Assembly (NCBI RefSeq): GCF_000002075.1
Contig: NW_004797557.1
Span: forward strand, 554,989 to 618,988
Reading direction: 5' to 3'
Source of the DNA: Aplysia californica
Taxonomy: Eukaryota
DNA: 64,000 bases
Of the stretch, positions 22,801 to 24,682 are shown piece by piece. The number at the start of each line of letters is the position of its first letter. Position 1 is the stretch's first letter. The notes below the pieces were generated by a model, which ran no database searches, was not told the origin of the DNA, and saw only the letters and a program-made list of their open reading frames with translations. The position numbers and the translations under genes were made by a program.

Positions 22801-24682
22801 TATTCCAATTATATTAGTTTGGGGTTTCTAAAAGTGATTAGGCAATATCAAAGGTGTCATATGAATTCAACAATTTTCCAGCTTTAAAAGGTCATATTAA
22901 AAAAAGTGCAACAACAGCATCATTTAAACTTCCCAGGTAGGTTGCCTTAAGTAATGTGATAAAATGCTGAAAGTTATGAATGTGTACCAAATATAGAAGT
23001 GAAAATATGAGACATATACCGGAGTCAGGGGAGCGCTTTTTTTCTCGTTTTAACGCTTCGAAGGGGACAAAAAAAGCGCTCAAATGATTAAAATTTTCTC
23101 TCAGTGCTATATTTTCTTTCATATCTACTAACAGGAAGTCTATTCTATTATTTTGAAAATGTGGATCGGCCGAGAATTTCGTGTCTTTTCATTACCGGAT
23201 TGGAATTGATAGCGAGCCACTCGAGCCGTATTTTGCGGCTCTCGGTCCAGCTTTGACGTCACGTCCGCGAGCCGCATTATGTAGTGAAAGTGTTAATAAC
23301 CAGATTCTATCTTTCATTACAAAAAACTGCATTTCAAGTTAAAATACCTTCAAGCTTAACATTACATTCCTCTTCTAATAAATCAAAGTTGATTTTGTGT
23401 AACTCAATAAGACAACTTTTTAGGTTGTCACTCTTAGTGGAGTCATGCTGAAAATTCCAGTGCTCTCCAAATGAATCATGCGGTGCCAAAATGTATCAAA
23501 TGTTAAAAGTTAGTATATTATGGTGCTTAAACTGAGAAGTCAAACAGGTGGCTAGTTTCAAATATATATTCTTATTCTTCAATTCAAGAAGAACTGACAA
23601 TTTAGTTTTAAAAATACTTACGACCTGAACTCATTTTTCTGCGAGATATTCTTTACCTAAAACCCAAAAATACGTCATTACAGATAGAAAAGAAGAAAGA
23701 CTGGAAAAGTATTCCATCGATACAGATGGAAAGACAAAAATATCTTACAGCGCTTTTGTTCAGGATGCCAGTAGCTCCTAAGTAGTTCCCCGGCCTGATG
23801 GTTATCACCTTGACTCCAAAAGGCTGCATCTCAATTCGTAGTGCATCGCTGAAGGCTTCAACAGCAAAACAGGAGATGCAAAAGGCTGACTGACCGGGAG
23901 CTGAAAGGAGCCCGCTTGCCCCCGACATGTTGATCACACGACCTAGTTGTCACAAAGGATAATGCATCATTGTGACTTCAAGTTGCAAAAAACGTTTGCA
24001 GCTGATTTCACAAGTGCGCAAGAGGAGTAACACATTATTATATATCTGGTACGAGAAAACAAGCACTTGTAGTCCTTCTCCTTTAAGCGCCCCCCCCCCC
24101 CCATCCAACACACACACAAACATAAAAATACTCACATTCACACAACATATAAATGAGATCGGATAAAATCAAGTGAAATAAAAAAGACACCTGACAGAAA
24201 GTACTGGATGAAACAAACAATTCAACCAAAGCTGACAACAGTATAAACAGAAGTGACCTTGTTAAAGGTGCATTAAGACCAAACACCCGCATCAGTCTGT
24301 CCATCTAACGAACAACAGATGGACAGTAGCTGACTGGGAAACTGATGTTCAAACCACCTCACGTCGGTTTGTTGGCGTGCCTGTCATCAATATGGACGTC
24401 ACAACGAATGTTCTTATTTTGTCATGGCAAGGAAGCAGCATTTTCAGTAAGCAATAATACAATGTATCATAAAGCAATGAAGCTTTGCCAAACATAAAGC
24501 CACCTTCTGAATGAATAAATAAAATGACAATACAGTCAAACCTGTGTAAGACGACCACCCATTGTCAAGGAGAAAAGTGGCCGTCTTAGGCAGGACTGAT
24601 CAAGATGAAGATAACAAACCATTCCCATCTGAGGTCCCAATCGAAAGTAGCCCCATTGTTGTTGTTTTTGTTTTTGTTGTTG

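Follow-up and report, generated by a model that had tools for sequence, protein, structure and literature searches.

Does an SDR (short-chain dehydrogenase/reductase) gene in the genome of the sea hare Aplysia californica still encode an enzyme? The question is raised by a gene on the minus strand of a 64,000-nucleotide stretch of contig NW_004797557.1 (positions 554,989 to 618,988; assembly GCF_000002075.1), referred to below as the window, in which the residues at the catalytic serine, tyrosine and lysine positions have all been replaced. A preliminary description, made from the letters of the window, had read its product as a membrane-anchored pseudoenzyme that binds NAD(H) (nicotinamide adenine dinucleotide) and lipid. 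Our analysis makes it probable that the gene is the local orthologue of an ancient, catalytically dead clade of SDR9C proteins (BDH1/RDH/17beta-HSD6-like), whose members would act as non-catalytic partners or regulators with a membrane hairpin and, probably, a bound NAD(H).

The former active site is encoded by exon 4 (Table 1), which reads RVINMSGASG...SAFCISCFAVEAFSD from 23942 to 23749 on the minus strand; window positions 23749-23940 of this strand translate to RVINMSGASGLLSAPGQSAFCISCFAVEAFSDALRIEMQPFGVKVITIRPGNYLGATGILNKSA. HMMER alignments with solved SDRs (3m1a, DHRS9 in 9b2f, and YMR226C) place a glycine on the catalytic serine (vinmsG against vvnisS), a phenylalanine on the tyrosine and a cysteine on the lysine. 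Translation and alignment thus confirm that the whole triad has been replaced, including the serine, for which the change had been called only probable. The fold is that of a classical SDR: taken singly, exons 2, 3 and 4 score 27.6, 36.6 and 30.2 bits against Pfam family PF00106 (adh_short), each above the curated cut-off of 26.6, and all orthologues carry PF00106. The cofactor motifs that had been reported as kept (SGCDSG|FG, LDVT, NNAG and VNLLG) were all found; of the classical SDR signatures, SGCDSGFG corresponds to TGxxxGxG, and the PG motif (RPGNY) is present as well. With Gly, Phe and Cys at the other three sites, the asparagine of VNLLG is the sole residue kept from the N-S-Y-K tetrad of a competent SDR, and the protein lacks the catalytic residues of a D-beta-hydroxybutyrate dehydrogenase (Enzyme Commission number 1.1.1.30).

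The protein belongs to the SDR9C family (BDH1/RDH/HSD17B6/DHRS9), as DHRS9 is the top match by both sequence and fold. Among solved structures, DHRS9 (SDR9C4; PDB 9b2f and 9b2g) is the best sequence match for P0165, the closest full-length orthologue (E 6.6e-45). The TGCDSGFG, NNAG and PG motifs and a C-terminal extension are common to the family, which also includes RDH5/7/16 and SDR9C7. The window protein differs from it in having Gly/Phe/Cys for the Ser/Tyr/Lys of the tetrad, and in its N-terminus, a conserved double hydrophobic hairpin that is common to mollusc orthologues and that we take to be unlike the mitochondrial presequence of BDH1-type proteins.

The gene itself is intact, as the preliminary description had stated. 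An exon model, built with tblastn using gastropod orthologues as guides and then by reading the junctions, comprises seven exons on the minus strand with 365 codons, no internal stop and a terminal TAG. Six of six introns are GT..AG, and the second glycine of SGCDSG|FG is a codon split across exons. Transcript evidence covers window positions 21300-26700, with exon 7 outside that stretch. Two Logan contigs, one of run X13 from a study of 2020 (2776 nucleotides, depth 9.9) and one of run X14 from a study of 2011 (485 nucleotides, depth 5.6), join exons 6-5-4-3 and skip exactly 21496|22339, 22440|23749 and 23942|26506; at their ends the skipped segments have CT..AC on the plus strand, equivalent to GT..AG on the strand of the gene. 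Their RNA nature is presumed and is supported by these exact, intron-free joints. The confirmation of exon 4 by RNA sequencing that had been called for is therefore at hand, as the exon is correctly spliced and identical letter for letter in contigs from two different studies. Because two independent transcript contigs match exon 4 exactly, its odd residues are not an assembly or sequencing error.

In an exhaustive HMMER search, the best matches of exon 4 all lack the Ser/Tyr/Lys triad, with relatives reading, for example, ...SGSAGQLSLPGQSAFCISNF..., ...SAFSIASF..., ...SALCVSSF... and ...SAFSMSQF... at this site. A representative search combined with a word search returned no relative of exon 4 closer than 81% identity (P0001). 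The sequences without the triad form a group restricted to caenogastropod and heterobranch snails, with 18 full-length members plus fragments, referred to here as the dead clade. It includes proteins of Physella acuta, Lymnaea stagnalis, Bulinus truncatus, Biomphalaria glabrata, Candidula unifasciata, Plakobranchus ocellatus, Elysia crispata, E. chlorotica, E. marginata, Littorina saxatilis, Nucella lapillus, Babylonia areolata, Batillaria attramentaria and Pomacea canaliculata, together with several transcript contigs. Orthologues outside the dead clade come from abalones, Patella, Lottia, Gigantopelta, many bivalves and one chiton.

A tree of 66 rows (IQ-TREE quick search, LG+C20+F+G4; P0005, P0275, P0306, P0307, P0312, P0081 and P0316 were left out as fragmentary or fused) unites the 18 sequences without the serine in one clade (Shimodaira-Hasegawa approximate likelihood ratio test 94), which consists of Caenogastropoda (99) and Heterobranchia (99). 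Patella, Haliotis and Gigantopelta belong to the group of gastropod orthologues within which this clade is nested, and that group is in turn sister to a bivalve clade (97); the mollusc group adjoins the vertebrate BDH1 and BDH1-like sequences that serve as outgroup. The gene tree mirrors the species tree, and its members are therefore orthologues rather than scattered decayed copies. These patterns support a loss of catalytic residues that would date to an early snail ancestor, far older than the species A. californica. The window's own protein is not a row in the tree, and its membership is drawn from identity, discriminating columns and synteny. Summed exon by exon, the window shares 50-56% identity with heterobranch members, 45% with Haliotis rufescens and at most 43% with bivalves, and of 13 discriminating columns it agrees with the dead-clade consensus at 10 and with the catalytic consensus at 2. 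Synteny is conserved: in the window, exons of an endonuclease IV gene (AP_endonuc_2; ~52049, 58091 and 61077, plus strand) lie head-to-head with the SDR gene, and an AP_endonuc_2 gene is placed likewise at the Elysia chlorotica locus L009.

Comparison of the catalytic site across molluscs shows how the residues were lost. Within the dead clade, the serine site holds Gly in 17 of 18 sequences and Ala in one contig (lgn284). The tyrosine site holds Phe, Leu or Trp, with Ser in a fragment, and retains Tyr in Pomacea and in the same contig lgn284. At the lysine site, Lys is kept only in the hygrophilans Lymnaea, Bulinus and Biomphalaria, and V, Q, E, D, C, N or S is found elsewhere. Outside the clade, Haliotis rufescens, Gigantopelta, all bivalves and the chiton keep all three residues, while Haliotis asinina and Patella caerulea read Ser/Cys/Lys and Lottia reads Ser/Ile/Asn. 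On the tree, the fewest changes are one for Ser, four for Tyr and three for Lys. This is consistent with a single change of Ser to Gly on the stem of the dead clade, with Gly fixed since, and shows that Tyr and Lys were lost several times independently after Ser, the lysine site drifting almost freely. A separate observation concerns the two abalones: at Haliotis residue 250 (loci L011 and L012) the tyrosine codon is TAT in H. rufescens and TGC (Cys) in H. asinina, and this means either that the tyrosine was lost independently and very recently or that one of the assemblies carries an allele or an error.

Conservation elsewhere in the protein follows a different course. Across 52 aligned sequences, G68, C69, D70, G72 and G74 (TGCDxGxG), N144, N145 and A146 (NNAG) and the tetrad asparagine N169 are invariant, and D117 (LD[VI]T), P239, G240 and T246 are nearly so. 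The dead clade thus keeps the Rossmann cofactor motifs (TGxxxGxG, the Asp of LD[VI]T, NNAG, the tetrad Asn and PG...T), and conservation in it extends to the hydrophobic hairpin at the N-terminus, the C-terminal domain and the alpha-E and alpha-F helices. Some columns are conserved in both groups with a different residue in each: the catalytic Ser, now Gly; Thr one position before the lysine site, now Ser; and Q-G just before beta-1, now K-V. The relaxed columns are the lysine site and the substrate-loop glycine after PGNF, which is present in 95% of catalytic members. Most of the newly conserved columns fall either within the N-terminal hairpin (Q, F, A and F of QF...LAFLPF) or within the C-terminal part (K of LSKS and Q of GG.QL). 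From this pattern it would seem that, while the active site lost importance, both the membrane hairpin and the C-terminal domain gained it.

The dead proteins remain under selection. By the Nei-Gojobori method, on codons mapped from genomic loci, the ratio of non-synonymous to synonymous divergence (dN/dS) between dead orthologues is 0.138 (bootstrap 0.096-0.181; dS 0.70) for Elysia crispata and E. chlorotica, 0.121 (dS 0.96) for E. crispata and E. marginata, and 0.104 (dS 1.14) for E. chlorotica and E. marginata. The catalytic pair Ostrea and Saccostrea gives 0.080 (dS 1.28), and Haliotis asinina against H. rufescens, with the tyrosine changed to cysteine in one and intact in the other, gives 0.130 (dS 0.43). 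Constraint on the dead proteins equals that on their catalytic orthologues; averaged over columns, conservation is 0.655 for the dead and 0.636 for the catalytic group. When the window is compared with locus L004 over exons 3 and 4, and with L007 over all exons by counts added up exon by exon, synonymous sites are saturated (proportion of synonymous differences, pS, 0.77) and dN is 0.25-0.35. The dN/dS comparison that had been proposed as a check therefore reveals purifying selection in the clade (0.10-0.14 in Elysia), whereas the window's own lineage is saturated and yields no ratio. With the triad lost, the gene intact, the messenger RNA spliced and the clade at these ratios, the product has the features of a pseudoenzyme, its inactivity being predicted from the residues that are missing. 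The earlier pseudoenzyme reading gains support from the age of the triad loss, from its being shared by a snail clade and from this purifying selection.

The proposed membrane anchor is likewise supported. Exon 1 encodes hydrophobic segments at residues ~9-29 and 31-54 (Kyte-Doolittle, 19-residue windows up to 2.6), which would form a membrane hairpin. An AlphaFold2 model was made for the orthologue P0165 rather than for the window's protein, with an alignment of 52 sequences (mean predicted local distance difference test score, pLDDT, 91.2; predicted template modelling score, pTM, 0.86). It has two long helices at the N-terminus (residues 3-28 and 30-53) and a Rossmann fold, with helix alpha-F spanning 207-226. 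In this model, the equivalents of the catalytic tyrosine and lysine, Trp209 and Cys213, both lie in the first two turns of alpha-F. Its best fold matches are DHRS9-NAD complexes (template modelling score 0.84-0.87, 34% identity), followed by 17beta-HSD1.

Taken together, the sequence and the model suggest a protein that would be anchored in the membrane by its helical hairpin and probably still binds NAD(H), perhaps with a lipid-like ligand. Hydride transfer assisted by Tyr, Lys and Ser in the canonical way would not be possible, as the residues for proton relay and substrate polarization are lost. By analogy with known systems, the protein would most likely pair with an active SDR by way of the conserved alpha-E/alpha-F interface and serve it as a structural or regulatory subunit. 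The same genome encodes at least five canonical SDR9C-like paralogues with the S...Y...K arrangement (L002, L003/L020, L015, L016 and L017; active-site motifs YSASK, YTMSK, YCTSK, YCVTK and YCASK), two of which lie ~20 kb apart on contig C691, and these would be possible partners. Alternatively, the protein may act as a nucleotide or ligand sensor.

The mechanism that we judge most likely for the snail protein has precedents in two SDR-fold subunits with a substituted catalytic lysine, each inactive alone: petunia benzaldehyde synthase beta (PMC13418739) and, as cited there, BbsC of BbsCD (von Horsten et al. 2022). According to the same source, both are needed to stabilize the complex and to shape the active site of the partner (PMC13418739). 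Both are soluble, come from a plant and a bacterium and represent other SDR families; partner binding is demonstrated for them and predicted for the snail protein. An animal precedent for a conserved inactive SDR is HSDL1 ('inactive hydroxysteroid dehydrogenase-like protein 1'), which PMC9859523, citing Meier et al. 2009, describes as having lost the catalytic tyrosine, as inactive and as conserved among species. It belongs to another SDR family and not to SDR9C. HSDL1 is not known to have lost more than the tyrosine, whereas the snail clade, which is restricted to snails, lost the whole Ser/Tyr/Lys set. Our literature search found no earlier description of this snail clade, but only the analogies with HSDL1, benzaldehyde synthase beta and BbsC. 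Conserved SDR pseudoenzymes are already known as a kind; what is new here is a snail clade with a well-resolved stepwise loss. The catalytic tetrads of invertebrate SDR9C orthologues are identical according to a survey of SDR gene structure (PMC9859523), a statement to which the dead clade is an exception.

Several points weigh against a conserved, non-catalytic partner or regulator. Conservation and the P0165 model are the basis on which its binding of NAD(H), its insertion into the membrane and its binding of a partner are predicted. Residual or altered chemistry may persist in the parts of the clade that keep Tyr or Lys. The tree comes from a quick search with no bootstraps. In the window's lineage, the dN given above is compatible with constraint, purifying selection being demonstrated for the clade and not for this lineage. 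Finally, two runs of polyadenylated RNA (X21 and X22, with ~1.5 Gb read from each) gave zero reads on the SDR exons, and depth was 5-10 in the two positive transcriptomes; expression is thus low or tissue-restricted.

A first alternative is that the protein is still an enzyme, in which other residues catalyze or which carries out a reaction requiring only bound NAD(H) and a reshaped pocket. The strong conservation of Gly at the serine site suggests a new constraint over mere loss, and the retained cofactor motifs and tetrad asparagine, the overall conservation equal to that of catalytic orthologues and the columns newly conserved in the dead clade would all fit such an activity. However, no alternative Tyr, His or Lys is conserved clade-wide near the pocket, and the newly conserved columns lie mainly in the hairpin and the C-terminal part, away from the active site. 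The former lysine site accepts acidic, polar, hydrophobic and basic residues, and the substrate-loop glycine has been relaxed too. We therefore consider a remaining enzymatic activity unlikely.

A second alternative was put forward in the preliminary description, namely that the two cysteines of FCISC, next to the nicotinamide pocket, regulate the protein by reversible disulfide formation or by metal binding. Both cysteines are real in DNA and RNA, and the orthologue model puts the pair in the first two turns of alpha-F, a helix that starts two residues before the tyrosine equivalent. CxxC motifs of thioredoxin-fold proteins sit in the first turns of a helix; against this, cysteines at i and i+3 within a helix are poorly placed for a disulfide. 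Cysteine at the lysine site has arisen in at least two other lineages, represented by two unrelated contigs (jgi165, WSAAC; lgn166, FSVSC) that both lack the first cysteine. Among the ~25 orthologous sequences examined, the two cysteines occur together in none but the window's, and the nearest relatives read FCISN, FSIAS, FCVAS, SCLSN and LCISN, so that the conservation of F-C-x-x-C expected of a redox or metal site was not found. The first cysteine is no novelty, as Cys after the tyrosine site is common across the family including its catalytic members, with vertebrate BDH1 reading Y-C-[IV]-[ST]-K. The second occupies the former lysine column, where the dead clade has V, K, Q, E, S, C, N and D and which ranks 9th in variability among the 360 columns of this clade. 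A functional switch is thus not supported, and we regard it as very improbable.

The origin of the second cysteine can be followed in relatives, which have Asn (L004) or Ser (P0002 and P0004) at this site. Lysine can become cysteine by single-base steps (AAR to AAY to AGY to TGY), and since the Asn, Ser and Cys states are joined by such steps, the multi-base change needs no special cause. The earlier argument that the change from Lys to Cys is not a sequencing error holds, as the transcripts agree, but the idea of a multi-base jump does not. We conclude that the CxxC pair of this species is in all likelihood a by-product of drift at an unconstrained site. There is very little to recommend a bolder combination, in which the snail-wide dead SDR9C protein would be an obligatory NAD(H)-sensing subunit controlling an active membrane SDR (of retinoid, steroid or ketone-body metabolism) and the second cysteine of the sea hare would in addition have been recruited for a thiol-redox response.

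The remaining alternative, that this species carries a decaying duplicate or unprocessed pseudogene or that assembly or sequencing produced an artefact, could appeal to the low or absent expression in two polyadenylated-RNA runs and to the Ser that replaces the nearly invariant Thr of TGxxxGxG, but SGCD is found in catalytic bivalve members too, and 365 codons without a stop, six canonical introns, correctly spliced messenger RNA from two independent studies with exon 4 identical, the same triad state in more than 18 species at a dN/dS of ~0.1, and a dN of just 0.25-0.35 against saturated dS largely refute it and leave it barely credible.

Table 1. Exons and former active-site residues of the SDR gene (positions in the window).
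Feature	Position	Strand	Content and evidence
Exon 1	30263..30476	-	ATG at 30476; located by tblastn of orthologues, donor GT; conserved motif QF..LQIFE..YL..LAFLPF, then beta-1 and start of glycine-rich motif SGCDS(G)
Exon 2	29144..29344	-	remainder of cofactor motif, (G)FGNACARRLD; beta-2; LDVT
Exon 3	26506..26658	-	NNAG and catalytic-tetrad Asn of VNLLG (residue ~170), both retained
Exon 4	23749..23942	-	beta-5, former active-site loop, helix alpha-F, PG motif (RPGNY); borders exact
Gly codon at catalytic Ser position	23920..23922	-	residue ~197; from alignments
F-C-I-S-C	23883-23869	-	Phe at Tyr site (~210), Cys ~211, Cys at Lys site (~214)
Exon 5	22339..22440	-	both junctions in transcript contigs
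Exon 6	21362..21496	-	clade-conserved LS.LSKS and LVDGG.QL motifs
Exon 7	19736..19834	-	ends in stop TAG (19738-19736)

The introns and flanks of the gene contain further features. In intron 3, transcript-type contigs reach a very high depth (~90-580) over positions 24377-25462, and polyadenylated-RNA reads fall on both strands; variant letters and loose ends are numerous. The segment is a dispersed repeat or transposable element that is expressed and does not belong to the gene. Within intron 4, polyadenylated-RNA reads cover one strand of 22567-22747 at a depth of 8-9; they show a 1-base deletion at 22711 and have loose ends at 22685 and 22733. This segment is probably another repeat copy, transcribed from elsewhere in the genome. 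Just downstream, on the plus strand, of the acceptor region of exon 4, a run of ~13 C at 24090-24102 is followed by CA-rich sequence, a low-complexity part of the intron. Just upstream of exon 1, at 31377-33017 on the minus strand, open reading frames with wording typical of mariner/Tc1-type transposases (for example ...HLFGPVKRHISGQRF...) look like the remnant of a transposon. A 1239-amino-acid open reading frame at 43152-46871 on the plus strand, upstream of the AP_endonuc_2 exons, had no match in the Pfam scan.

These results bear on how the orthologues are named. In databases they appear as 'D-beta-hydroxybutyrate dehydrogenase, mitochondrial-like', 'BDH1-like', 'retinol dehydrogenase 7' (RDH7) and '17-beta-HSD type 6-like', and such names predict a chemistry that, judging from their residues, the proteins of the caenogastropod-heterobranch clade would be unable to perform. 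The point is relevant to work on the metabolism of ketone bodies, retinoids and steroids in Aplysia, Lymnaea, Biomphalaria and other snails used as models or known as vectors. The clade also provides a clean natural series from enzyme to pseudoenzyme, in which Ser was lost once and its replacement fixed, while Tyr and Lys were lost repeatedly and later. The rate of protein evolution is unchanged, which implies that a non-catalytic function was already under selection when catalysis went.

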